Assembly (NCBI RefSeq): GCF_000143415.4
Contig: NW_003314322.1
Location: 559,430 to 623,429 of the forward strand
Reading direction: 5' to 3'
DNA: 64,000 nt
From: Selaginella moellendorffii
Taxonomy: Eukaryota > Plantae > Lycopodiophyta
The notes beneath the pieces were generated by a model. The model made no database searches and was not told the DNA's origin. It was given only the letters and a program-made list of their open reading frames with translations. Each line of letters begins with the position of its first letter. Position 1 is the first letter of the stretch. The translations under genes were made by a program, and so were the position numbers. This document shows, piece by piece, positions 9,397 through 34,700 of the stretch.

Positions 9397-11102
9397 GAGT
9401 CATGAAATCGCGGCAAACCCTGATCGAGAGGACCTGCCCAATCTAGCTCACAGCACGGAATAAAATCTTGTCATCGCTGGAAGAAGCATTCATCAGCTCC
9501 CTATGACTTCTTGCCACGTTCGTAAATCCAATATTTTAACTATATTTTAGAATATTCCTCAATTCAACCGTCTATACATGAGTCTAGGGAATGCATCTGC
9601 CCACATATGTTAAGTTAGTGTGATTGCAATTAGTAAGAATTCAGATTTGGCTGGCTCTATTGAGATTTAACACCCTTCAAGAGAGTACAGTCATTAGGCT
9701 AAGTGCCATTTTACTTCTGCTTTAAGCTAAAAACTTAAACACATAAATCTTAAAACTTTTCTCTATTTCTTTTCATCCGATAGCTCATGGATGTTTAGCA
9801 GCATATTTCATAGAGATCAGGTCTTGGATCTCATAATCTGGCTTAATGTCTTCTAAGAGATGGATCCTTCTGTATGACTCCAATAATTAACCATTTTAAG
9901 AATCCTTTATTGACTGCATGAATCTAGTTATTTAGAAGTAAAGGACCAGTAACTAAATTATAGAGTAATCCCTCTGTGAAAAACCTTAAGGATTTTTTCT
10001 CCAGCTTGAGGTATTCTATAATGGTCACATTGCACATCATGGCATCAGAGCTCTTGATAGGGAAGCCCAAGGAATGGATTATGATTGAGATCCTAGAACT
10101 CAAGTGGGAGATGGCTTATCTTCCATTTTTGTATTGTCTGTAATGCAAGTTATTTTGTACAACAAAAATTTAAGATGATAAAGTTGGCTTTAAAAACTCA
10201 GAAGTTGGTTGAATATTATCCTTTTGTGAGGTTCAAGTGTAAAAATAATGATGTTGTATACTAATATTAACATAATGAAATTTTGATAGCTATTGGATTA
10301 ACTTCAATCCGGACCACTCACTCTTGTATATAAACTAGGGTTCTTGGGTTAATTGATATGCATATTTTTGTATTCTATTTTTATATTTTATACACTCACG
10401 TTGGTGGAACTGAAAGGCAAGTTTGATTGTCCTTGAAGAGTGCTTAAATTTGGGATTTTGGTTTAGATTTAACTTTTGCATCATCTAGATCTCACTTCCC
10501 TTATACCCTTTTCAATTTTTTATTTTTTATTTTTTCCTTTTCATTCATCTTCATAGCAAAGCAACAACCTCCTCCTCTAACTCTAAAACAATAGTTGGTG
10601 TAATTTCTCAATGCTATGCAATTGCAATTGAACAATCATATTTAGTTGATAGTGGTATTCATGGCACGTGGTACAATTTCTCTTGCTCTTACTACCAATA
10701 CTTGCGTTTAACTAGAATTCTTCTATGGGAATCCTAGAGATAATGTGTACTACTGGTTCGATCATTTTATGGTGACTGCCACATATCATTCTTAAGATGA
10801 TGGTCAGTGTTTGTATAACTTTCCTATAAGTCTTCAAAGGATGTTATTATAGTGATACAATAGCTTGAGCATAACCACTTGTGCAAATTGGAGCATTCTC
10901 TTGGACCGCCTTTTCCACTTTTTGCTACATGTTGTTTAGATCCACTTCCTGTGAAAGATGATCTTGTTCCAATGAAGATTGATGTTTCCACTGATATAGT
11001 GCACTCTATCTCTCTTTTCTTAGGCCAATTGTAATTGCTTAATAAAAGAGTTTTTAATGGCTATTTTATCCCCATTTATCCTCCAAAATTTTACAATGAC
11101 AG

Positions 11103-12226
11103 TGTAAGCCACAAATTTTTCCTTTCCAATTTGCCAGCTTACCTCGCCTATCCGTCCAACACCGCCTTGGCTTTTGCTAAGTTCCCTCGCCAAGGTTCTC
11201 GCCTATGGTACCAGCTCCTACTTGGTTTCAGCTACTCACTGCACGAGCAACGGAGTGTTACCCATCCTTCCACGGATTCCCAAATCACTCCCAATCCCCC
11301 TCCCCAGGTTAGACTGGACTTAAGGTTCGGCTACACTCCCCGCAAGCACAAGCAGCCAAGCACACCAAGCTTCCAGGTTCCTAACATCCCTTGGTACCAC
11401 AAGACTTGATCATGGGACCCTCTAAATCCCAAGTCTTGAGTGCAACACTTGCTTCGGGACGCCGGGGCGAAACACCGTGGCCTAACGGCCCGGTATGGGT
11501 ACCTCTCGCCCCCCACTTCCATCCCGAAGGAAGGCCCAAGCCCCTAGGAAGGGCGAGGACCAATGAGCCACATGGTACTCAAGTGGGGCACCATTCCACA
11601 TGAGCCGGGAGCACCGCAATCGGTTTCCCTTTCGGGAGTGGGAGCTGCTCTTGAGCACTTCCTTGGATGGCCCCTCCGGCACCAGCCAAGTCCATGCTCA
11701 CTCCCACCCAAGGCCCCTCGGTCCCAGTCTCAACCTCAAGTCAGTTTGGAAGCCCAACTGGAGAGTCCCTTCAAAACTGGTTCCTGGACCTCACTATCCC
11801 TACTATACTTTTGGAACCCCCTGCAGCCCCCCCCCCCTGGGAGATGCACGCTTTGGGCTTTCACCCCTTGACCCGTATTAATATTTGGACTTAGTCTCTG
11901 GCTCGATCTCGGACCCGATTTCGGATCCGACTTTGGATTCGGTTTCGGACTCGATCTCGGACTCGATCTCGGACCCGATCTCGGACCCGACTTCGGACTC
12001 GACCTCGGACTCGGTCTCGGACCCGATTTCGGATCTCGGACTCCGTCTCGAACTCGGTCTCGAACTCGGACTCGAACTCGGTCCCCGAGTCGGTCTCGAA
12101 CTCGGTCCTAGAGTCGGTCTTGGACTCGATCTTCGACTTGGTCTCATCCGATGAACTCTTTGTCATTTTGGTCATACTTTCGGGGTTCCTTTAGCCTACG
12201 ACACCTCGGCGAGTTGGTTCCTTACA
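11103..12226. mobile_element. Solo LTR (1124 bp) nested in the Gypsy element
   Basis: TGTAAG...CTTACA termini and a perfect 5-bp TSD GACAG (11098-11102, 12227-12231). GC content is much higher than the host element. Confidence 0.88.
11890..12150. repeat. 12/18-bp minisatellite inside the solo LTR
   Basis: Tandem GACTCGATCTCG/GACCCGATTTCG and CTCGAACTCGGT units. Confidence 0.9.
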
Positions 12227-15163
12227 GACAGTATGTCTAAATTTCATTCCATTATTATATGTGCTACATTACCCCCTTTCAAATATGTGAATGTCTTTAT
12301 TGACTATTGACTAACAACCCCTATTACACCAAAGGGAACTAACATCTCTATTTCTACACAAAAATTTATCAATCCTTTTATTGTTTAAATTAGCTATTTT
12401 ATGTGAGGTAACTAATCATCCACCCGTATCACAATCCCATGGTGGCATCCATAAGAGGAAGAACGTATGCATGGATGTTCAATACATATGATTTCAAATT
12501 TATGGATAAGAATATACTTTACTCAAGGGTTTATTATATTTTCTCCAATACCACATGTAATGCACTTTATTTCACTCCCCTTAAGCTAATTAGAAAAGGG
12601 GTAATTATTTGATAAGAAAGCCTTTAATAACTATTTTATCCCTATTTATCCCCCAACATTCCAAAAATCCACAATAATAGTATATCTAAATCTTATTCCA
12701 TAATCACATGTATTACACCTAAGTTCAAGGACAAGGGTGAGGACATGGTCATGGCTATGAACTACTGTTGATCTTCTCAACATTTCCCTAATTCCCTCCT
12801 CTCATCTATGTCTTAAATGCTTTAAGATTGGCAACCTCTATTGCTTATGTAGAGACCTTAGTGTCAACATGTTTTGTTGGTGGTGTTTCAGTGGAAGTTC
12901 TAAACACTGAGATGCTTTTGAGAAATGAGGAGTCACGTAAGTCTTTATGCGAATAAGTTAATGACTTTTTTATTTTTATTTCAGGAGTATCATCAAAGGG
13001 TACCAGTTTATCTAATGTTTACTTCCCAAGCTCGTTTTTATAATAGGTTTCCTATTATTTTTTCTATATTAGTTGATACAAACTCGAGTTTATCTTTTAT
13101 TGTTCAGCTTATTGCCATATGCTGCTATCTACATTTGCATCGTGTAGTAGAGCCAGTTTTCATTATTTATAGAAACGGTTACATATATGCAAATGCATGG
13201 GATGAGGCACATCTAGTTGTGCATATAAACAATTTTGAGTTTGAGTTGCAGCCATTGTAAGTTGTGCTGAATTGAGCTTTTAACTTTATCCTGTATGGAT
13301 TAATTATGGTGCAATCAGTGTAACTTTGAAGCTTCTCCCTTTTGTCTCACATTTCCTTATATTTCTTCTATTCCTTTTACTTTTATTCTTTTTTGCGCCC
13401 CTTTACTCTTACTTTTGCTTCCATCACTTTTGTCTCTTTATTACTTCTTTTTATATTTCTGTCTTGTTCTTTTATACCCTCTTTAAATCCCGTTAACAAT
13501 ATTTGTATTATAACAGTTGATTGGCTTATGAAGGAGTGCCAATCTCTTTGAATTTGATTTTTCATTTAGAGCCAAAATTATAACACATCATCCTATTCTA
13601 ACTGGGGATGTTTGTTTAGTCAATGTTCTAATTCATCATCAGTCACCAAAAGAGGTTAAGATTTTATGTGCAAATATTAAGGAGATATTAAAAAATAGTG
13701 TTATCCGAAAGTCATAGAGTCCTTAGGCATATGAACCTCCTCTTATGATAAACCCTAATAGAAGTATTTATTTCTGCATCGACTATCATTTGTTAAATAA
13801 AGTCATAATCCCGCCTCACACTGCTAATCTTTTGGATTGTCTAGGGAGAAATCATTAGTTCACTATATTAGATTTTCTAGGTACTGGCAAATGTTGATAG
13901 TTGATGAAAATATTCCTAAAACTACTTTTTATACATTATTTAGTTTGTACAATTTTTTGGTAATGCCATTTAATTTAAACAATACTCCAATGACTTTTCA
14001 ACAAATGATAGATGAGATTTTTTATGATATATCACAAATGATTATTGACTTCATTGATGATGTCTTGATCCACTTGAAGGGGATGTAGAAGGAACTTGCC
14101 TATGATGTTTGTACGGTGTTGGATCGGCTGCGAGAAGTTGGTTTAAAGCTAAAATGATCAAAGTCCGTGTTTAGGTCTTCAAAGACATAACTTATTTAAG
14201 GTACCATATTTCAAATGAAGGTTTGTAAGTTGATCTTAACAAATTTATGGTTATTCCCAAACTCTTTATTCCAAAGTGTGTGAATGACATACAACTCTTC
14301 TTAGGCAAGGTGCAATATCTTAGCCATTTCATTGATCATCTTTTTTATTATACTATACTGCTGCAAATATTGTTAAAGTTGTTAATATCATCTTTCATAT
14401 TATCTATAGGCTATGAAAGGGCATTTATGGATTTTAAAGAGTTATTGATGACTCTTTCAGTTTTAACATATTCTAACTACACTTAACTTTTCATTTTGCA
14501 CATAGATGTTTTTGATATTAGTTTTAAATGTGTGTTGATGCAAGAGAACTTGAGTGTTCTTAGTCATATTATATACATCAACCATACATTACAACTAGTA
14601 CAACTGAACTACTCTACAATAGAGGAAATGTGTTTAGCAGTAGTTTTGGGGTTTTGAAAAACTTCATGCATATTTATATGGTTCTCGGACATTATTAAAA
14701 GATGATCATGCTATAATTACTTCATTATTGAAGTAAAAAAACTTAGTTAGTCGTATTGTTTAGTGAGCTTTAAAGCTTTAGATATATGATTTTGGTATTA
14801 TTTATCACCTAGGGAGTTATATAGCTAATATTAATGCCCTTTCTTGAGCTCTTCTTCCTTTTTCACTCTTTTCTCATATTTCTAATGAGCTTGTTATTCC
14901 AGTATCTATGGCTATTTGGACAAATATTTTATATCATCAATAATTGTTGTACTTGATGTTAAGTGTTTACAAGATTTATTTTCTCTTGATAAAGTTTATG
15001 AGGCTCAAAAGGTTAAGTTGTGGATTCAAAACCTTTGTGATGAGATTGAGAATCTTGCATCATTTGTTAATGACTTGCCATTTTGGCATTCACATTTTTA
15101 ATATGACCTTGAAGACAATCTTCTTTATTTTATGGAGATGGATCATAATGATCATTTATGGTT

Positions 15164-15694
15164 CTATTCAAACCCAAAGACGCTTAACCCCAACTATCCC
15201 AAAACCCTTAACCGATTGGAAAAAGTGGTGCATTCTTGTTCATAGGCCCTTTCCCTTTGGTTGTTTACAATTCACCACGCTTCCCTACAAGTTCACGCTC
15301 TCGTGAACGGAAGCTAAAAGCTATAGCTCTCCCGAGAGCCCCACTTTTTTGACACCCTACCCCTCGGGTCGAGCCCAACGGGAGCAAACTAGACCAGCCA
15401 GATATCAATCAACATGTGGTGCGATTCTCCTAGCCAACCAACAAAGTCAGACCCAAAACCTCTTTAATACCAAATGTAAATTCATGAATTTGGACTTTTC
15501 AGAAACTCCTTGAATTTGGACTTCCCGGGAAGTCACCCAACCCAATACTATTCAAACCCAAGGACGCTTAACCCCAATTATCCCAATACCTTTAACCGAT
15601 TAGAAAAAGGGGTGCACTTTTGTTCATGGACCCTTTCTCTCTATATTTGAACTCTATAGATTGTCTCTCGAATCATTTCCTTTGGTTGTTTACA
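15164..15694 (-). mobile_element. Cassandra-like TRIM retrotransposon with a 5S rRNA-derived LTR segment
   Basis: Direct repeats: 15475-15694 is a full LTR (TGTAAAC...TTTACA on the minus strand) and 15164-15269 is truncated. Degenerate tRNA-Met PBS at 15460-15472, PPT-like GGGAAGCGTGGTGAAT at 15270-15285, and a ~205-bp non-coding core. Confidence 0.85.
15518..15572 (-). promoter_or_regulatory. 5S rRNA internal Pol III promoter-like segment (box A, IE, box C) within the TRIM LTR
   Basis: Minus-strand GTTAAGCGTCCTTGGGTTTGAATAGTATTGGGTTGGGTGACTTCCCGGGAAGTCC matches recalled plant 5S rRNA at 46/55 positions without gaps. Confidence 0.85.
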
Positions 15695-18008
15695 ATTGTG
15701 TTTAGTGCCAAACTCGTAATATTCCCCCTTTTACTATAGAAGAATGGTTTGAGTCAATTGTAGTTTTATGTTTATTTAAGTTAATGGCATTTTATCTTAC
15801 GGTCGATTATTAATAATGATTATGTTATTATTACTTTTAACTACTTTAATCATTAAGTGGAAGTCAATACTCTTGATAATGTGTTTACTATTGCTATTAT
15901 ATACTTTCTCTTCAATCGAATGGTGTTTCAATATTCCTATTTGGAGCAAATTTTTTCGAATGATGTTCCCACATTTATAGCTAAAACATTTTAACATTTT
16001 GGTTTGGAATACACCATACTTTCACAAATGTTTATCATCTATAATCATATGGTTTGGTAGAACGGCCTATTCGGACCTTCAAAGGATGACCACAAAATAT
16101 ATGAACTTTCAACATTTAGATTAAGATGGTTATTTGCTATCTCTTTTATATAAGGTGCAAAGTTTTGTTAGTACTTCATCATATAAATTGTTATATGGTC
16201 ATGATTTAATATTACCAACAAAGTTGAGTTTACCTTTATAATTGCTATAAACTATCTATACTACATCTTGGGATTAATATTTGATGAGCATTTTTCCAAG
16301 TAGAGTTTATCAAACATCTAAGCCGCATACAAATGGGACAACAATATCATTCTCCACCTACAAAGTACAAAATGGATGACTTTATGTTAATCCATTTTCC
16401 CAATCTTACAATACATTATTTGTCTAAAAAGCTCCTTCTTCTGTGGAAGAAATTGTATTAGGTGTTATAGCAAGTTAGACTTCAAATTTATGAGGTTCAA
16501 TGTGATGTATAACAAACTAATCCTCTAAAAATTATGCATATAATAGCTAAAATGTTTCGTATAAAGGGATCATGAATAACTAACACTACATATAGATTCA
16601 CCAATATTTCCTCTTGATATTTCTCCAAATTTTAATTTGTCCACTAAAGAACTTTAACTATCTTCCATTCTTCTAAGATGAGGGAATGATGTGAGGTCCA
16701 AGTGTATAGTTATGATGTCATATATTAATATTAATATAGTGGGATTTTGATAGCTGTCAAATTAATTTCAATTTGGACCACTTCCTTTTGTATATAAACT
16801 AGCAAGGCAAGGCAACTTGGGCTAATTTATATGTATATTTTTGTATTCCATTTTTGTATTCCATGCATTCACACTTTTATACTTTTAAGTTTCAAATATT
16901 TAATAAAAATTAGGTACAAATGATTTTAAGAATTAATAAATATTCCTTACATCAATGAACTAAGCATTGTTGCAAAAGTGCAGGAAATTATTCTAGAATG
17001 GTTTGCAAGAAGATTCTATAATATTTCTTTAGAATATTATATTCACAAACCTTGAACCCAAGGAGATTTTAAAAATTTCCTTTAGAATATTATATATCAC
17101 ATAATATATCCTCTATAATACCATATACCTCACACCAATTACTTGGTTGTAAGAGGTAGTTTTGGTTAGTTTATGTCATTCTTTCATGCCATTGAGATCC
17201 TAGGCTGACAGTTCTACTTAAATTGATTTTGCAGACAGAACATCTTTCTTGATCCTTGCAACAAAGATGTGAATTTCCAGTGGGCTTGTCCACATAGACT
17301 GATGGCACAGAGAAATTGCAAATTAATGATATTTTTGCATTGTCTAGAGTCAAGGTTTTGCTATTGGGTTCTTTGTGTGAAACCTTAGTCAATGCACTAG
17401 GCTTGGCCACAATGAACGACATTTTGTCATCATAAATATATACCATAAGAACTGTTTCTAGATGCCAACATCTAGCAAGGCAAGCAACTTGTGGTTGTAA
17501 AGGAAACACACATCTTTTTCTATACACACTGTTGTTGACATTTGCTTCGTATGGCTAAATCATAAGACCTTGCGGTGGCATTATTGCTGGAGTAATAGGC
17601 CCTCCAGAACACAGAGGATAGTGACATCTAGGCTCAGGTAGTTTACTTGGCTGTCACAAGCCGCAAAGAGCACAAGCTACATGAAGATCACTACTACCTA
17701 GCCTCCTCTTGTACCACCTCAACCAGCACCTCTGCCAGCATTTGCATCTAGGGCTGCTTGCAAGTTGGACAACTCATGTAGATCTGTTGATCTCGAGAAA
17801 TCTTTGCTGAGATATGCTCCTAATTGTCCTTAGCTGATGCTACACTACCAACCTACACTCCACACACTAGTGCCATCAAACAAGGAATCCCTTCTCCAAT
17901 ATGTCACTCTGGAAAACCAAGGGACACACCCCACCCCAGCCAAAGATTCCCTTTAATCCCCTACTGCCAACCAGAAAAAAGGAAACCACAACATTCTGAC
18001 TTTCCATC

Positions 18009-25142: not shown

Positions 25143-27158
25143 ATGGATCCAGGCGTCATTGACGCGCTGGGCAAGAGTATGGCCACGCTTCTCACAGTGG
25201 TAAGTAAAATGCCGTTCTAAACTTCTCGTTGCGATCCTTTTGTTTTCTTCTGTTGTTGATTCTTTTGTTTTCTTTTTTATTTTCTAGTCCCGCGACAACG
25301 ATGGGGTGGATTTCCTAGCGGAGCTGCTGGGAGTTTTAGCGCGTGGGCACTTGTGCCAAGTGAGCTCGGACATGGAGACGATGGAGTCCATCGTAGAAAA
25401 CCTGGTCGACTCCTTCTCGACGGGGTATTCAAATTTGAAGAAGAAACGCGGGGATCAGAGCTCCAGTCCAGATGTCGACGACCGGAGAGTCTCGGAACTG
25501 AAGAAGAAACGCGGGGGCTCCAGTCCAGATGTCGACGATCGGAGAGTCTCGGAACTGAAGAAGAAACGCGGGGATCGGAGCTCCAATCCTGTCGACGAGC
25601 GGAGAGCGGAACTGAAGACGAAACGCGGGGATCCGAGCTTCAGTAGCAGTGTCAGTATCTTTGCTGACAGAGAGCGGGAAAAGGAAAGGCAGCCACATCC
25701 CAACGTACGCCTTTCCTGCCGGAGTGGAAGCTTTCGCGCAGCTCGGGAAGCTGGAGACGGTCTGTCACTTCATGGAGTCGTGGAAGAAGCCGGATCTCAG
25801 GACGTTCTATCCGTCGATGGTCTGAGTCTAAGTGACGAATGGGAGGATGGATCGAGCAGTGAGGATCAGGTAACAGTAAAAGAAGGTGGCATGCATATGT
25901 GTGGAGCTTTCCAGCACTTGAGACGGGAGTTTATGAAAGCTTCCCAGCAATCAGGGGCTACAAGACCGCCGCAGATCATAGATCCGGAGAAAGAGCCGAC
26001 CGTGGAGCCGGAGAAAAAGGTCACAGATACGAAGAAAGAGGTCACAGGTCCGGAAAAGGAGGTCGCAGATACGGAGGTAGAGGCCACGGATTCAGATTCA
26101 GAGTCGACCGTGGAAGGTGGATACATAAAAGTGTTACAGCATGAAGTTGAGGAACTGGAGTACTTCGTGGAGGAAGAGGAAGACTCTGGTGGAACAGGAG
26201 AGCTTGTGACGTTTACTGTGGCTAGCAGCTGCGGCCGCCTCGGACCGGCGTCGAGGCCTATCTCGCACGCGTTGTCACTTCGACAACAGACGCTGATCGA
26301 GCAAAGGCGAAGCAACTCTCTCAAGGAAATGGAGCTCGTCTGTGCGATGAAGGGCTTGCAGCTCAAGGAGCGAGAGCTGGACATGCAAGTCGAAGCGATC
26401 GACATCGGCAGGGAGACGCTGGACGTGAACAGGAGCACGCTCAAGTTCAATGTTTCCAAGGCTGAACGAGACGCCGTGGCCGCCGACTGTGCCGACTTTC
26501 GGAGCTCCACGTCCGACTACTTCGTCGCGGGCTTGCTGATCATGTTCGGGTTCACGGGGTATTGCGTGTGGAAGAATCTTCCGGAGTGGTTTAAAACGCT
26601 GAGCAGCTCGTGTGCTGCAACACCTACAGTCACTAAAAAGGTTTGTAAGCTTTTCTTCTCTCTTTGTTGGCTTTGACTCACATTCGTTTCCTTTGCCAGG
26701 CATGGTACCATTGGAACTTCGTTGGATCGATAACAAGTAACACCGGCTACTTGCTTTGCATCGCCAGAGGGTGTGCTGGAGGGATCGTTGGACTGCTGCT
26801 GTGCGTGCTCCTCCTCTTCGTCTGCAAGAAGACGCTCAGCTCCTCCAAGAACGCAATGCCGATGACTATCTTCTTGGTGGGGGGCTCCTTCATCGGCTTG
26901 GTCGGGAGAGCGATCATCGACCTCTTGGGGGGACAGGGATGGAACTGGATGGTGGTGTGGCTACTCTCGTGCGTGCTCCATGCCTGCACGCACTTCTTCA
27001 CCGAGTTCTTCGTCAAGCTCCTCAGCAGGAGCAGAATTGCGGCGATCTTGTTCCACGTATGTTTGGCGGTGGGATTGCCGCTCGGGGCTGGACTAGCAGG
27101 ATTTCCATCAGCCTTTCCATCGCTGAATGTTTTTTTAGCGGGGCCTGCAAAGTTTTGA
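25143..27158 (+). CDS. CPR5: CPR5-like nuclear-pore membrane protein (3 exons)
   Basis: EQRRSNSLKEMEL..KGLQLKE..L....DYFVAGLLIM..GY...SSC and several C-terminal TM helices ending ..LP..AGL..F, as in CPR5. Confidence 0.8.
25436..25640 (+). repeat. In-frame 57-63 bp tandem repeat in CPR5 (LKKKRG..SSPDVDDRRVSE x3.5)
   Basis: Directly visible in both DNA and protein. Confidence 0.9.
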
Positions 27159-27301
27159 AGGGATTTTTGATCGAAATCCCATGATTGTTTCTCTTAGAAA
27201 CCTTTGCTAATTTATAATAATTTTTGTGCTATCTTTTGTTCTTTCAACGCTTGAAATAGAAAGCTAGCTCGAGCTGGAGAAGGAAAGAAGCCCTAAGCAA
27301 A

Positions 27302-28060
27302 ATGGAAGGGCGCCTGGATTTGCTGATTGATCTGGACGATACCCTGGTGTCCATCGGCGACGACATCAAGGTTCCTGTCAAGGCGCTGGTCGGCTCATAC
27401 AAGTTCGCTCACGGTGCGTTGGAATTCGTCGTAGCTCTGGCCAGGATTCCTGGGACAAGAATCGGTTTCTACAGCTGCGGCTCCAAGCAGCGCAACGAGA
27501 ACCTCATGGAGAAGCTCGCGGTTGCCCTCGAGGAAGAGCTGGGATTCAAGATGAGCGAGGAAATGGTGGTGTACAGCGTGACCCGCGGAAACAAGAAAAC
27601 GCTCCAGGGGCTGAGGGAGGGGCTGGACCTGGAGAGAACCATCCTGGTGGACGATGCCGGCAGGAACTCGGAGGCGGGCGAGGTGAGGAACTTGCTCAAG
27701 ATCTATCACAGGAAGCGGCTGTACGATGAAGAGGGCAAGCTTTGCAAAGGTGGCAAAGTCTTCAAGGCCAGGATCGCCAACAATCTCGTCCGCGCTCTCG
27801 GCCTCATCGTCAAGTCGATCCGATCGTCCTCTTCCGCCGTCACGGTGGTGCAAGCGCTGGAGTCGCTCCAGTGGAACGGGGACGAGTATCTCCACGACTC
27901 GAGCAACTCGGAGGAGATTTACCAGCTGGGTGTGGAGGCCATGAGAAGCGTGAGGCCGGACTTTGGCATGAAAGAGGTGGTGAGCTCGGTTCATCCTTGG
28001 TCGCCACACGAGTTTAACGAGGAGCTCTTCCCAAGTTCACGCAGCCAGATCCTCCTATAA
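27302..28060 (+). CDS. Intronless HAD-superfamily FCP1/NIF-type phosphatase
   Basis: Motif I LLIDLDDTLV, G..EF, motif II FYS, motif III K, motif IV RTILVDD...N...NL. Confidence 0.85.
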   Translation: MEGRLDLLIDLDDTLVSIGDDIKVPVKALVGSYKFAHGALEFVVALARIPGTRIGFYSCGSKQRNENLMEKLAVALEEELGFKMSEEMVVYSVTRGNKKTLQGLREGLDLERTILVDDAGRNSEAGEVRNLLKIYHRKRLYDEEGKLCKGGKVFKARIANNLVRALGLIVKSIRSSSSAVTVVQALESLQWNGDEYLHDSSNSEEIYQLGVEAMRSVRPDFGMKEVVSSVHPWSPHEFNEELFPSSRSQILL

Positions 28061-28243
28061 ACCCACTTTAAATTTCTCGTTTCTCTAATGCAAGGTTTCT
28101 TTGATCGCTGAACCATCAGTGATCTACTAGTGGGGATTTTCTTTTCTATCCAATGTCACTGCAATCTGGGCCGTCTGATTTGAAACTTTTGTTCAATCTC
28201 GGCCGTTGGCCGCAGGATTGTATCACAAGCGGCTCAAGGCGCG

Positions 28244-31200
28244 ATGGAGGCCTCGTGGCATGAGTTGGCGGCGCTCGGCGGCGGAGGAGGGCATCGCCAC
28301 CAGCAATGCCAGCGCCCCCTCATCGCCGCCACTCCGATTTTTTTCGTGCCTCGTTGCCACGTCCAAAGGTCAGCCTCCGATTCTTTCAGGGTTTTAGGGG
28401 TTTGGATCGGTCGCTTGGAGGAACGAGATGTTGTTCATGCTTTCATGGATATTTCTATCGAAATGTAGGTGATATTTTGATGTGTGGTTTTTTTTGTCTT
28501 GGCAGGAACCTAAGGATTGTTTGCTCTGTCTCGGAATCGGTGTGTAGAAATTTTCCTTTGGAGTTTGATCTTTTCTTACGATGTTTTTCTTGTGTAGTTT
28601 TCTCCCAGCACTGCGACAGCTCTTCAATCAAAGAAAGCGTTGAGCAATTCAGTAAGCATTTACGACACTACACTACGAGATGGTGCTCAGGTGAGGTCGT
28701 TAAATTTTCGTCCTTCGCTGGAAACTCCACAGTGTTTTTTCTTTAGATGGTGGGAATTTCCTTGACTCTAAATGACAAGCTAAAGATTGCTAAAGCTCTC
28801 GCAGACATTGGTGAGTTCCGTGGCTATTTTTCACTCGATGCAGTATGTTGAGATAGTTTGTATGTGTTAAGGTGTGGATTATATCGAGGGAGGATGGCCC
28901 GGATCAAATCCAAAAGACGCAGAGTTTTTCAAGCTTTGTAAGGACAACATTTTGAAGGGGCAGTCCTCGAAGCTTGCGGCATTTGGTTCGACTAGAAGGA
29001 AAAACTCCACTTGCGAAGAGGTTTGCTCGCCAAAATCGCGTGGACTCTGAAATTCTGATTGCTTGAACAGGATACTAACGTGCAAGCGTTACTCTTTAGC
29101 GAGGCAGAGGTTATCACGGTGGTAGCAAAGGTGACCTTCTTCGTTCTTTTCTCGCCCGAGTGGTCTCACATATTTGATATGGTCAGGCGTGGGACGTACA
29201 GGTGACAAGAGTACTCGAAACAACACTAGCAGAAAACTTGAGAATGGTCGCGGAAACTATTTCGTATTTTAAGGTGAGAAACTTCGGTCTGCAGTTGTTG
29301 ATTCCTCTGTTCACACATGTATTGAGAACAATCTCAGGTCCGAAGCAAGGAGGTAATGCTTGACGCTGAGCATTTTTTTGATGGTTTTACAGCAAACAGG
29401 TACCACGCGTTTTCTGTTAACAATCGTTGCTAAGCGATCGTGCTTTTTTCACCAGAGCTTACTCGCTAGAGTGCTTGAAAATTGCGGCGAAGGCTGGAGT
29501 TGATGTAGTCGTCTTGTGCGACACCAATGGAGGGTCCATGCCCTGGACTGTAGAGGTATCCATCTTTTCGGCTAGTTGAAAAGAAGTTCTCACTTCTCCC
29601 TGGAACAAAAAAAACATCACAGGAGGTGACAAGAACTGTTAAAGAAGAGTTGATGCCTTGGCCACATGTCCGTATAGGAGTACACACACACAACGACACG
29701 GAACTCGCTGTTGCCAATTCTCTGGCAGCTGTGCGAGGTGGGGCATCGCTAGTTCAAGGATGCGTCAATGGCTACGGGGAGCGAACTGGAAATGCAAATC
29801 TGGCACGTATGCTCTTGGAACTTGTACTTGAAAATACTAAGCTATTTTGTGCTGTTCTTCGCAGATTAGCGTGATCGGGGGACTTCAAGTCAAGATGGGA
29901 TTTACGTGTATCCCTCCCGAATCTCTTGCAAATCTTTCCAAGCTGGCGTCCACTGTCGCGGACGTTACAAAGCAGACAATGTCACCAACGCAACCGTACG
30001 TTGGCTCGGCGGCCTTCGCTCACAAAGGTGGAATCCATGTTGCGGCGATACGCAGGGTGAGAAAATCATCCTCCTTTCTTCTCGAAAGAAAAGTTTAAGA
30101 AAAACGCGTATTGCCGAACAGATGCCCGAGAGCTATAATCATATGGATCCGACTGTCGTTGGAAATGCCATGCGTTCAGTCGTGAGTGAGCTATCTGGCA
30201 AAGGTAATATACTTGATAAGGTAAGCAAGCAACAAGTTTTTCATTAGTCGTTTTAACAATCTGAGAGCTCTCAGGCTGAAAAAGCTGGCCTTGTTTTGGA
30301 CAACGATGTCGCCGGAAGTGTTCTTGCGCACATAAAGCAAATGGAAAGAGAGGTACGCAAGTTTTTTCACAGCTTTTACTCTCATCTTTAACAGAGTTTG
30401 AGTTGCAGGGATGTGCTTTTGAAAACGCTGGTGCCTCTGTTGATATGCTGATTGTTCGAAAGGGAAAGCGCTACCAGCAGCCGTAAGGATCTACTGACAA
30501 ATTCATTCTGTCTGACTTTCTTCCTCGCAGCTTTCAAGTCTTGGAATTCACGGTGCTTTCGAGCAACCGCGGCGTGCATTCCATTAGTAGCAACGGGAAC
30601 TCGCAGATCCAACAAGATAACTGGCTCGCGTGGTGTGGAAGTGACAGTCAAGTGAACCAGGCGATGGTGAAACTCTCCGTCGATGGCAAAAGTCAGGTAT
30701 GCAACAACTTGCATGAAAGCATGAACTTGAGAGATTTGCTCTTCCGGCTCAGGTAAGCGCAGCGGAAGGGATCGGTCCAGTGGATGCTCTCAGTCACGCT
30801 TTAAGGTGGAGAATTCTCGATCGATCGCGTACTTGCAACTTACATTGTCTTGCTCGAGATTCCAGGAGCGCGCTCGAGAAGCACTACCCGCAACTCGAGC
30901 AAGTGGAGCTCGCGGACTATCATGTCCATCTAGTGGAGCCATCGACTGCTCACAAGGGGACCCTTTCAACGACGCGAGTGACAGTTGACTTCACGGATGC
31001 TTCTGGCAACAAGTGGACGACCGTGAGTCTCATTCAAACGCAAGTGTTCTTCATTGTTTATGCTCAAATCACTTTCATTGTTCCCAGGTTGGTGCTCACA
31101 CATCCATCGTAGAAGCCAGCTTCCGGGCGCTCGTTGACGGCCTCGAATTTGGGATCGTCAATTGCTCCGAGGTACCAAAGCTCGATCAAAGTTTTTAGTT

Positions 31201-31274
31201 TTCTTCTTCTTTTTGCTTTGTCCAAACGCCGATGTTCTTCACAGGATGGCTGTTCTGCCGTTCACAAAAAGTAA
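28244..31274 (+). CDS. cimA: Bacterial-type citramalate synthase (CimA/LeuA-like DRE-TIM protein with regulatory domain), many introns, probable transit peptide; start uncertain
   Basis: [91 protein letters not shown] and [11 protein letters not shown]. Confidence 0.88.
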
Positions 31275-31738
31275 AACGATGCGTTCTAGGCTATTTGAGC
31301 AGCTACAAAGGAAAGCGCTTGGAATGTTCCCAGGTTTTTGGACTTGGCCATGGTCCAAAATCCACGTAAAGGCCCAAATATTGTACTGTAATTAGGGCTT
31401 GTCTTATTTCTGAGAGGGTTTCTGGTCGCCTCGCCTCGCCAGTGGATCGAGGCGCCGTGGCGCTGCAATCGAATTCTCGCCTCGCCCGCGAGCTATGGAG
31501 CTGGATCAGTGATTGACGATGAGGAGGAGCTGGATTCGCAGCGCCGGAATTCGCCATTGCAAAGGAGCGCAGGATGCTAGACTTGTGGTGGCTGTTTGGG
31601 GGACGAGCTCGCTCTCCAGCTGAGGACGAGAACGGTGAGTGAGCCCCTTTTTCTAAATTTCCTCTCTTTGCGATTGCATTGTATCTTTAGAACTCTATCC
31701 GCGATGCTTATTTATTAAAATTCTTAACCCAGACAACG

Positions 31739-34700
31739 ATGTCGGACGTGTCAGCTTTGCTCCAGGCGTCCGTGTTGCGAAATCTCTCGGACAAGCTCTA
31801 CGAGAAGCGAAAGATCGCTGCTCTTGAGGTGAGATTATATCCCTTTCCTTCCTGTAAAATTTAACAATAGATTGTTCATCAGGTGGAAGGGGTCCTGAAA
31901 TCTCTAGTTAGTTCCGGCGACCATGAGAAGATATCCTCCGTCATATCGATACTAATCAATGACTATGCTCTATCGCCACAAGCCAATCACCGAAAGGTAT
32001 GTGAGAGTGAGACCTTCGCTTTTTCTTAGTTTTTTCTCTTATGCCAGGGGGGGCTGATTGGATTGGCGGCTGCTACTGTTGGCTTGGCCTCCGAGTCTGC
32101 CCAGTATCTTGATGTAAGTATTGAGTTCTTCTCCCTTGCGAAAAAAGGGGTTTTCTTTTTTTTTTTTGCTCAAAGGAATGACTATTTTGCAGAGAATTGT
32201 TCCGCCTGTTTTGATTTCTTTCACGGATCAAGACAGTCGGGTGCGATATTACGCATGTGAGGCACTTTACAACATAGCAAAGGTACATCTTACTTTTCAT
32301 CATGGGGTTTCTGTGCTTGGAGCTAACTCAGGGTAGGTATCTAGGTGTCGAGAGGTGACTTAATTGTTTTCTTCAACAAAATATTCGATGCCCTTTGCAA
32401 GCTCTCGGCGGATTCAGATCCTAATGTTCAAAGTGCAGCTCATCTTCTGGATCGTCTTGTCAAGGTAATTTCGTCAATCTCTTAGTTTCTTTTAATTTCT
32501 TAAGAGTACTCATTTCTTTTATTTTTTGATATTTTTTTATGCTCAGGATATTGTGACGGAAAGTGATCAATTCAGGTAGTCAAAACGCTTTGGTTCTTGG
32601 CTAAATGTTTTCTGCTCAGCATTGAAGAATTTATTCCGCTATTGAGGGAGCGAATGAACGTGCTCAATCCGTTTGTCCGACAATTTCTCGTGGGATGGAT
32701 CACTGTATTGGACAGCGTCCCGGACATTGATATGCTGGAGTTCTTGCCAGACTTTCTCGACGGTAACATCATAGTCGACTCTTTAGTTTTGTAACCCTTT
32801 GCATGTAGGTCTGTTCAACATGCTTAGCGACAACAGTCACGAGATCAGGCAGCAAGCCGACTCTGCATTGTCCGAGTTTTTGCAAGAAATTAAGAATGCT
32901 CCTGTAAGCCTTTTGTTTTTAAAACGCATTTATCATTCTTGACCGTGAGTTTTTAAATATTTAGTCCGTGGATTACGTTCGCATGGCTGCGATACTTGTA
33001 CAAAGAGCTAGATCACCTGATGAGTTCACTCGTCTAACATCCATAACATGGGTATGAAACGTCAATCGTTTCTTTAGTAGTTACTTTAAAATATTTCAGA
33101 TGAGCGAATTTGTGAAACTTGGAGGGGATCAGCTTGTGACATTCTATGCGGAGATTTTGGGTGCCATTCTACCAGCAATCTCTGACAAGGAAGAAAAAAT
33201 CAGAGCAGTAAGATTGAGCTCTTTAACTAAACATAATACGCTAAAAACATCTGATTATAAGGTTGCTCGTGAAACAAACGAAGAGCTTCGAGCCATTCGT
33301 GCTGAACCAGTTGAAGTGATAGACATTGGATCAGTTCTGAATGCAGCTAGACGGTAATCTTTGTCGTTTCTAAAAACTTGGACTTGAACAAAATAGTTGT
33401 GTAGGGAGTTGGGAAGCGAGTTTGAAGCCACAAGATTGGAAGCCTTGCGGTGGATGCTTGTTCTTCTTGAGAGACATAGAACAGAGGTACTTGGAGTTTT
33501 CTTTTCTGTACAGTAGTTGCTAACATTTTAACAGGTTCTATCGTTTCTTGACGAAATATTTCCTGCATTGCTTCAGTCTTTGTCGGACGAATCTGATGAT
33601 GTAAGCATTTGCATTTGTTTTTGTATGTTTGTCACCTAAAATGTATCTGTTAACAGGTTGTGTTGCTGGTTCTGGAGGTTCAAGCTTGTATAGCACGGGA
33701 TACACAACAATTTCGGCGTTTGATGGTCTTTCTTGTACATAAATTTCAAATGGACAATCTTCTGCTTGAAAGGTACTTTACGAAGTCAATAGTTAAACAG
33801 TCTTCGTGACCAGCATTAAATTTTCAGGAGAGGAACCTTAGCGTTGCGACGTCTCTGCGTCCTCCTTGACGCCGAGACTGTATACAGAGAGTTGGCAACT
33901 ATCCTGGAAGGCGAGGCGGACTTAGAATTTGCAACCGTTATGGTCCAGGTATCAGTATCTAGTTTGCGTTATCAGCGAACTTATGCATGTGCACTTACAG
34001 GCACTTAATTTAATTCTCCTCACGGCTTCAGAACTTGCCGATTTAAGGGCACTGCTAAAGGAGTCGTTGACAAATTCGCAAGGAAAAGATCTTTTTGTTG
34101 CTCTGTATTCATCGTGGTGTCACTCGCCGATGGCTACTGTTAGCTTGTGCTTACTTGCTCAGGTAATGTCCCGTCCAACTTCTTGTTCCAAAACACATGA
34201 TCATGCTTTGCAGGCTTACCACCATGCAAGCGCAGTTATCCAATCTCTCGGGGAGTCGGACATCAACGTCAAGTTTCTAGTTCAGGTGGATAAGCTGGTA
34301 CGGCTTTTGGAAACTCCAATCTTTGGTTACTTGAGGTTGCAGGTAACCGTTTTACTACCACTTGGTCATTTTCTAACGCTTGTGTATGACAGTTGCTAGA
34401 ACCAGCGCGCTATCCCTCGTTGCTGAAGACGCTCTACGGGCTGCTCATGCTACTCCCTCAGGTGGGTACAGAAAATGAATTCTGGCAAACTGATCATTAT
34501 TGGCATTCGATTTAATGCATGCAGTTTGATGATGCAGCAAAGCTCTGCATTCAAGATATTGCGAACGAGACTGAAGACCATCCCGGCGTACGCTCCCATG
34601 CACATCCAAGCAACACCGGCGGCCGAGCTTGCTGGACTGAATGCAGGGCGTAGATCCGTATCGGCAGTACCGTACCTGTCTCACTATCCAACTGGAGACG

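Follow-up and report, generated by a model that had tools for sequence, protein, structure and literature searches.

We describe here a gene of the lycophyte Selaginella moellendorffii that is predicted to encode a bacterial-type citramalate synthase (CimA). It lies in a 64,000-nucleotide (nt) stretch of contig NW_003314322.1 (positions 559,430 to 623,429 of the forward strand), hereafter called the window, in whose coordinates all positions are given. The gene occupies 28244-31274 on the forward strand, exactly from the first ATG to the stop codon, and its 19 exons encode a protein of 628 amino acids (aa). The gene model was built by hand from GT/GC-AG splice sites and continuity of the reading frame, and the introns are short (48-137 nt). 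The spliced product is identical, letter for letter, to a RefSeq protein (P0153) recorded as “uncharacterized protein LOC9643899,” so that a gene model already exists for this locus, without a functional name. Two older partial models, SELMODRAFT_119853 on the same scaffold and SELMODRAFT_97271 on another, are nearly identical to the spliced protein except for gaps, and the latter probably represents the other haplotype. The initial annotation had placed an intron-rich gene at these very coordinates, which the start and stop codons and the spliced contigs bear out; its estimate of about 17 exons was too low, and the transcript-backed exons include one of only 34 nt. All the motifs it quoted are found in the spliced translation: an 11-residue motif at aa 111, AFGSTRR at 142, DAEHFFDG at 213, AFAHKGGIH at 368, and SELSGK at 404.

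Transcript contigs from four studies (runs X1, X3, X6, and X7) lie on the exons and lack the introns at the predicted junctions, with 15 of the 18 joints listed. Such intron-less contigs cannot be genomic DNA, and the gene is therefore transcribed and spliced. The contigs start upstream of the ATG, at 28229 in X1 and X3 and at 28210 in X7, where adapter letters immediately precede, and they reach 31400 at the 3' side. Between 26% and 47% of the sampled words of the gene stretch were present in 20 runs from 10 studies, approximately what is expected of an intron-free transcript. Splicing exon 1 straight to exon 3 breaks the frame, which an alternative start at ATG 28306 would restore; this solution was dropped, since the transcripts show the 34-nt exon (28506-28539) between the two. 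The tenth intron has a GC donor, and its removal is seen in an X1 contig that joins 29801 and 29864 without a gap (record positions 968 and 969) and in an X7 contig whose loose end at 29802 continues into the first letters of exon 11. The TIGR00977 profile (see below) is likewise continuous over this junction, passing from position 243 to 244/245. Alternatives for the end of exon 10, a GT donor one base on (GCAC/GT) and a 41-nt intron, were ruled out by frame, profile continuity, and transcripts. The GC-donor intron was removed in all the aligned transcripts, and in the alga Klebsormidium an intron of identical position and phase has a GT donor. Relative to the window, the X7 contigs carry four substitutions (at sites including 29488 and 30155) and, in the 3' untranslated region (UTR; 31302-31343), deletions of 3 and 9 nt. 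These differences probably reflect a second haplotype, which would fit SELMODRAFT_97271.

The assignment of the product to a family rests on curated profiles. P0153 scored 595 bits against the NCBIfam citramalate synthase model TIGR00977, for which the curated equivalog cutoff is 450, and the match covered profile positions 1-522 of 526. The runner-up, NF002085, which is the best model of isopropylmalate synthase (IPMS), gave 288 bits (cutoff of 517). Another 13 sister models were listed, each below its own cutoff. They include the bacterial LeuA model TIGR00973 (220 bits; cutoff of 598.7), the long-form 2-isopropylmalate synthase NF002991 (96; 455), the homocitrate synthase (HCS) models TIGR02146 and TIGR02660 (218 and 195; 414 and 463), the Leptospira-type CimA NF042433 (138.7; 950), and the archaeal IPMS/CimA/HCS group TIGR02090 (214.9; 484.75). 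Twelve of the 15 scanned exon pieces matched TIGR00977, collinearly along the profile, and 10 of these matched no other model. All the eukaryotic orthologues scored passed the TIGR00977 cutoff (488 to 610 bits) and failed all IPMS and HCS models. By these profiles, this expressed nuclear gene is predicted to encode a Geobacter-type citramalate synthase, in agreement with the earlier proposal of a bacterial CimA clade distinct from plant IPMS and methylthioalkylmalate synthase (MAM).

Some databases label the orthologues “2-isopropylmalate synthase” (NCBI for Klebsormidium and the JGI names), as would be expected if the protein were a divergent but ordinary IPMS of the leucine pathway. Automatic names are mixed: “(R)-citramalate synthase” in UniRef for Klebsormidium and Adiantum, “2-isopropylmalate synthase” for others, and “uncharacterized” for Selaginella. 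The reading as an ordinary IPMS is very improbable given that TIGR00973, NF002085, and NF002991 all scored below their cutoffs and that the motifs differ. The IPMS motifs EVGFP and HSSGIHQDG, present in Escherichia coli LeuA, are absent from the Selaginella protein. The grouping with IPMS/LeuA that would speak for such an enzyme was not seen either, E. coli LeuA being a distant outgroup in the quick tree described below.

The protein carries the three domains on record in Pfam for P0153: PF00682 (HMGL-like), PF22617 (HCS_D2), and PF08502 (LeuA_dimer). Exon 11, in the linker, scored 64 bits on TIGR00977, whereas no other model gave it more than 32, and the Pfam HCS_D2 match in the linker is weak. 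An AlphaFold model computed from a 13-row alignment, with a mean predicted local distance difference test score (pLDDT) of 68, was used for architecture only. In this model, the barrel is confident, the regulatory domain is moderately so and folds as two beta-beta-beta-alpha units, and the linker (358-410) and the insert (478-506) are poor. Foldseek matched the barrels of IPMS, homocitrate synthase, MAM, and the CimA of Leptospira interrogans (LiCMS), and only the full-length LeuA of Mycobacterium tuberculosis spanned both domains (589 columns). From the IPMS and LiCMS structures, we take Arg80-Asp81 of the LRDG motif to bind the 2-oxo acid and the metal, and His279 and His281 are presumably the metal ligands of DRE-TIM enzymes. 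The insert in the regulatory domain is partly specific to eukaryotes, its residues 486 to 492 being present in at least 60% of the eukaryotic rows and in at most 10% of the bacterial ones. The positions of these features are given in Table 1.

Table 1. Features of the Selaginella CimA gene in window coordinates
Feature	Position	Strand	Remarks
Transcribed region	28210..31400	+	5' end near 28210-28229; 3' UTR extends beyond 31400
Coding exons 1-10	28244-28368, 28506-28539, 28598-28690, 28747-28810, 28872-29020, 29071-29130, 29187-29273, 29338-29399, 29456-29555, 29623-29802	+	
Coding exons 11-19	29865-30056, 30122-30220, 30275-30352, 30409-30482, 30531-30696, 30753-30805, 30866-31022, 31088-31171, 31245-31274	+	
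Intron 10	29803..29864	+	62 nt; non-canonical GC donor (GC..AG), donor letters GCACGT
N-terminal extension, aa 1-70 (exons 1 and 2, start of exon 3)	28244..28648	+	Presumed organelle-targeting peptide
Catalytic DRE-TIM (HMGL-like) barrel, aa 71 to ~350	28649..29960	+	Pfam HMGL-like on exon 10; collinear TIGR00977; pLDDT 80-98
Arg80-Asp81 codons, LRDG motif	28676..28681	+	Column near-invariant in bacteria, kept here
Gln180 and Cys305 codons	about 29202-29204 and 29761-29763	+	Eukaryote-wide replacements
His279-Thr-His281 codons (HxH), HTHND motif	29683..29691	+	Invariant in 13 eukaryotic orthologues and in bacteria
Linker subdomains, exons 11-12, with AFAHKGGIH and SELSGK	29865..30220	+	Most CimA-diagnostic part
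C-terminal regulatory domain, LeuA_dimer PF08502, aa ~442-619	30409..31171	+	PF08502 on record; modelled fold
Variable insert in the regulatory domain, aa ~478-506	30565..30651	+	pLDDT <50; length and sequence vary among orthologues

The first 70 or so residues have no counterpart in bacteria, whose alignment to the Selaginella protein begins at residues 68 to 72. This extension is poorly conserved among orthologues, predicted to be disordered (pLDDT of 24 to 38; aa 1-68 in the model), and rich in Ser, Thr, and Ala, with 11 Ser/Thr residues. Acidic residues make up only 4% of it, compared with 11% of the remaining sequence. It probably directs the protein to an organelle. Branched-chain amino acid synthesis in plants is a plastid process, and the plastid is therefore the expected compartment, although the features of the extension would also be compatible with a mitochondrial location.

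Conservation was assessed in an alignment of 81 rows, in which the 100 columns conserved in at least 95% of the 59 bacterial members were taken as near-invariant. Selaginella retains 95 of these 100 columns, and the eukaryotic rows jointly retain 94% of the cells. The retained columns include those of LRDG (Arg80 and Asp81), DAEH, CDTNGG, HTHND (His279 and His281), GERTGNA, and AHKGGIH. Identity to the closest bacterial relatives is 50 to 55%, and identity between Selaginella and the fern Pteridium reaches 75% over 528 columns. Such a value across so deep a divergence indicates strong purifying selection.

The distribution of the gene was searched in a collection of 5.8 billion proteins, using as queries the Spirogloea orthologue, a profile of 13 eukaryotic orthologues, and a profile of the marine group, complemented by cluster look-ups; the searches covered proteins of 345 to 1,099 aa, a range that leaves fragments and pseudogenes outside their scope. 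Orthologues were found among vascular plants in Selaginella and in the ferns Adiantum, Ceratopteris, and Pteridium, in all the sampled lineages of streptophyte algae (Spirogloea, Mesotaenium, Closterium, Klebsormidium, Chlorokybus, and Mesostigma), and in the prasinophytes Pyramimonas parkeae and Bathycoccus prasinos. With the eukaryotic profile, all matches above the bacterial level (~790 bits) came from Selaginella, ferns, streptophyte algae, or prasinophytes, or from contigs inside their clade, and no protein of seed plants, bryophytes, Chlamydomonas, or Chlorella was found in the collection within that size range. The predicted absence from model angiosperms thus agrees with these deep searches, in which no seed-plant protein appeared. 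The same annotation had ascribed the enzyme to “this lineage,” which is right for Selaginella and too narrow as a description of its range. Because ferns, streptophyte algae, and prasinophytes also carry the gene, it is, judging from these predicted proteins, ancestral to green plants and no peculiarity of Selaginella.

A large set of marine metagenome proteins groups with Bathycoccus. One contig of this kind, a compact one of 98 kb (L082), carries at 10001-12076 an intronless orthologue of the Mamiellophyceae type among plainly eukaryotic neighbours (SUI1, SNF2-RING, MINDY, a TLC nucleotide transporter, and EF3), and the cluster of a related protein, P0349, includes B. prasinos CAL6278179.1. 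The look-alike clusters of P0153 in the ESM Atlas are mainly of Streptophyta, of Chlorophyta, and of Bacillariophyta. The cluster dominated by Bacillariophyta has 165 members and is named “(R)-citramalate synthase,” an attribution that could not be confirmed, and no named diatom protein was among the matches of the three queries to the 5.8-billion-protein collection. The family may have one more eukaryotic branch, in diatoms.

The origin of the gene was analysed with two trees. The quick one comprised 129 rows, made of 28 eukaryotic sequences, 80 labelled bacterial genome loci, metagenome matches, distant family representatives, and E. coli LeuA. The careful one (81 rows by 528 columns; LG+C20+F+G4 by posterior mean site frequencies [PMSF]; support given as ultrafast bootstrap/Shimodaira-Hasegawa-like approximate likelihood ratio test [SH-aLRT]) omitted redundant rows, E. 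coli LeuA, and four rows with very long branches, which are probably frameshifted or wrong open reading frames (L014, L016, L051, and L072). Many of the bacterial labels derive from metagenome bins. Both trees agree in placing the eukaryotic rows in a single clade (100/100), nested among bacterial members of TIGR00977, and in the quick tree E. coli LeuA lies outside. Within this clade, the branching broadly tracks the species tree, and Selaginella groups with the ferns (100/98). The sister group of the eukaryotes consists of five proteins of Anaerolineae/Chloroflexota (99/94), and both lie inside a clade rich in Chloroflexota (96/92). Proteins of this group, e.g., P0191 and an open reading frame in L001, are also the nearest bacterial sequences. 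Five residues of the regulatory domain (V469, N478, F581, H595, and R604) are common to the eukaryotes and the Anaerolineae group and rare elsewhere, and no residue was found to be exclusive to the eukaryotes and the two cyanobacterial sequences. These two sampled cyanobacteria group far from the eukaryotes, and forcing their union costs 66.9 log-likelihood units (P value of the approximately unbiased [AU] test, p-AU, of 0.0028). The cyanobacterial affinity suggested initially is thus replaced by one to Anaerolineae (Chloroflexota), a clade with the two sampled cyanobacteria being rejected by the AU test.

These relationships suggest a Chloroflexota-like bacterium as the donor of the gene, which the green lineage would have acquired before the split of chlorophytes and streptophytes. 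The gene would then have gained introns and passed by vertical descent to the prasinophytes, streptophyte algae, ferns, and one lycophyte that keep it. A comparable history has been proposed for the plant MGDG synthase, which would come from a Chloroflexi-type gene (PMC3276260). In both cases, a function of green plants related to the plastid (presumed for CimA) has its nearest bacterial relatives in Chloroflexi rather than in cyanobacteria. Since the enzymes are unrelated, the parallel is a precedent for the pattern of origin only.

Introns give an independent view of the age of the gene. In the Klebsormidium nitens locus (L084), eight introns could be resolved exactly, and six of them match an intron of Selaginella in alignment column and phase; a further one, after aa 592, has no unique GT-AG pair and was excluded from the count. 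The common introns lie after Selaginella aa 204, 258, 318, 382, 441, and 521, all in phase 0. With 18 introns in Selaginella and about 1,700 position-phase sites, we estimate the chance of six such matches out of eight to be of the order of 1e−10. Introns were therefore already present in the gene before Klebsormidium and land plants diverged, as the earlier suggestion of a long domestication implied.

The setting of the gene is ordinary nuclear. The next gene downstream (31575 to about 36500, forward strand) starts ~300 nt past the CimA stop codon and is a homologue of Vac14, recognized by the Pfam domain PF11916 Vac14_Fig4_bd (E = 3e−34; e.g., at 33929-34396, forward strand). The upstream gene (25306-28060, forward strand) ends at 28060; its open reading frame at 27302-28057 weakly matches a NIF/FCP1-like phosphatase (20 bits, just below the cutoff), and that at 25306-26673, of 456 aa, had no match in Pfam. 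Further away, the region 12000-18000 is AT-rich, with a GC content of 0.33 to 0.35 against 0.42 to 0.56 elsewhere in the window. The nearest relatives outside eukaryotes being bacterial, at 50 to 55% identity, a bacterial contaminant of the assembly or the dead relic of a transfer could be envisaged. This is refuted by the removal of 18 spliceosomal introns in transcripts, by the introns common with the alga, and by the eukaryotic neighbours, Vac14 among them. Together with the intact frame and the strong conservation of the protein, these leave such an explanation next to no probability.

A catalytic mechanism can be proposed by analogy. The metal would be bound through Asp81, His279, and His281, pyruvate would be held by Arg80 and the metal, and the enolate of acetyl-CoA would add to pyruvate, most likely yielding (R)-citramalate. 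The roles of the metal and of the 2-oxo acid follow from general knowledge of the DRE-TIM Claisen-condensing enzymes. Citramalate would next be turned into 2-oxobutanoate, the precursor of isoleucine, by isopropylmalate isomerase and dehydrogenase, a route that would bypass threonine deaminase. In bacteria and in apple, citramalate is converted to 2-oxobutanoate by the enzymes of the leucine pathway (PMC7826400). In Geobacter sulfurreducens, the citramalate route coexists with threonine deaminase and, under several conditions, accounts for 70 to 93% of the flux towards 2-oxobutanoate (PMC3002917), and deletion of cimA slows growth (PMC12131731). By analogy, parallel routes would be the likeliest arrangement in Selaginella, rather than a replacement of threonine deaminase. 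The retention of the LeuA_dimer domain suggests control by an end product, which the domain would probably sense, giving feedback.

The substrate, location, regulation, and physiological role proposed here are those expected from family membership. Overall, the explanation that we favour, with a confidence somewhat above even, is that of a Geobacter-type CimA of Chloroflexota-like origin, serving most likely a pyruvate-based route to isoleucine. Several points weigh against it. The bacterial sample was limited to the 80 best among the first 600 pattern matches, and the cyanobacterial one to two sequences. The literature searched contained no assay of an enzyme of the plant and algal clade, and neither exon 11 nor the complete protein, used as query against PDB sequences, retrieved a solved structure of the TIGR00977 clade, the best match being the homocitrate synthase of Sulfolobus (6KTQ). 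Moreover, the stem of the eukaryotic clade is long (0.40 changes per site), and two positions otherwise near-invariant in bacteria have changed in all 21-22 eukaryotic rows, from His to Gln180 and from Thr to Cys305; nearly all bacteria, the cyanobacteria and the Anaerolineae sister group among them, have His and Thr there.

The long stem, the two eukaryote-wide replacements where the sister group keeps His and Thr, and the eukaryote-specific insert in the regulatory domain would also be compatible with a change of substrate after the transfer, the enzyme then condensing acetyl-CoA with 2-oxobutanoate, glyoxylate, 2-oxoisovalerate, or 2-oxoglutarate. We regard this as unlikely, since 95 of the 100 near-invariant positions are kept and the orthologues tested pass TIGR00977 at 488 to 610 bits, while all IPMS and HCS models failed and EVGFP and HSSGIHQDG are absent. 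A different role for the same chemistry, with citramalate as an end product or feeding an organic-acid pool, 2-oxo-acid chain elongation, or specialised metabolism, is improbable to a similar extent. Family membership is silent on the destination of the flux, and the IPMS-derived citramalate synthase of apple supplies esters as well as isoleucine (PMC7826400). However, the LeuA_dimer domain is kept and conserved in the Selaginella protein, whereas the feedback-free apple enzyme and MAM have lost it (PMC7826400), and a gene kept from prasinophytes to ferns is more likely to have a core function than a lineage-specific one.

Among known systems, the closest is the CimA of G. sulfurreducens (TIGR00977), which the Selaginella protein resembles in the end-to-end profile match, the three-domain architecture, the 95 of 100 residues retained, and an identity of 50 to 55%. 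It differs in being encoded by a nuclear gene of 19 exons and in having the extension of ~70 aa, the variable insert, Gln180, and Cys305, and its CimA activity is predicted. CimA evolved in three different clades (PMC12131731). The enzymes of Leptospira (LiCMS; PDB 3BLE/3BLF/3BLI; Foldseek TM-score by target of ~0.82) and of the archaeal Methanocaldococcus type (TIGR02090 group) have the same barrel fold and catalyse the reaction predicted here, but they belong to separate clades of the LeuA family, as the scores of 138.7 (cutoff of 950) and 214.9 (cutoff of 484.75) indicate. IPMS and MAM (TIGR00973; PDB 6E1J, 3RMJ, and 1SR9) share with it the superfamily, the metal ligands, and a regulatory domain of the LeuA_dimer type. 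They are set apart by the below-cutoff scores and by the Selaginella motifs PGSNPKD and AHKGGIH, where E. coli LeuA has EVGFP and HSSGIHQDG.

To our knowledge, the apple enzyme (MdCMS) represents the sole described citramalate route to isoleucine in plants. MdCMS belongs to the same DRE-TIM Claisen-condensation group and leads, with pyruvate and acetyl-CoA as starting compounds, via citramalate to isoleucine, an activity that is predicted for Selaginella, but it has no regulatory region, is placed close to the IPMS/MAM clusters of plants, and is known from Rosaceae fruit (PMC7826400). In contrast, the Selaginella enzyme belongs to a separate bacterial clade, keeps the regulatory domain, and is older than land plants. 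The apple paper mentions neither Selaginella nor Physcomitrella nor any moss (PMC7826400), and the full-text literature searched contained no paper on bacterial-type CimA in plants or green algae. The protein thus extends an enzyme family already known, and what is new is its distribution, from prasinophytes to ferns with no seed-plant or bryophyte protein among the matches, and its Chloroflexota-like origin.

Taken further, the ancestor of green plants may have acquired CimA from an Anaerolineae-like member of Chloroflexota and with it a plastid synthesis of isoleucine from pyruvate, independent of threonine. Prasinophytes, streptophyte algae, lycophytes, and ferns would have preserved this route for about a billion years, and separate losses would have removed it from seed plants, bryophytes, and core chlorophytes. 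We propose this scenario tentatively, its chance of being right as a whole lying somewhat below one half. CimA is a single soluble protein, and Ceratopteris and several algae can be transformed. In textbooks, isoleucine synthesis in plants depends on threonine deaminase; if the scenario is true, many non-seed plants would have two routes to 2-oxobutanoate, and the textbook pathway would cover only a part of the plant kingdom. This would bear on the reading of flux models, labelling studies, and amino acid regulation in non-seed lineages and on the interpretation of herbicides or mutations that hit threonine deaminase. The gene would also provide a clean and datable case of ancient transfer from a bacterium to plants, with a non-cyanobacterial donor and subsequent lineage-specific losses.

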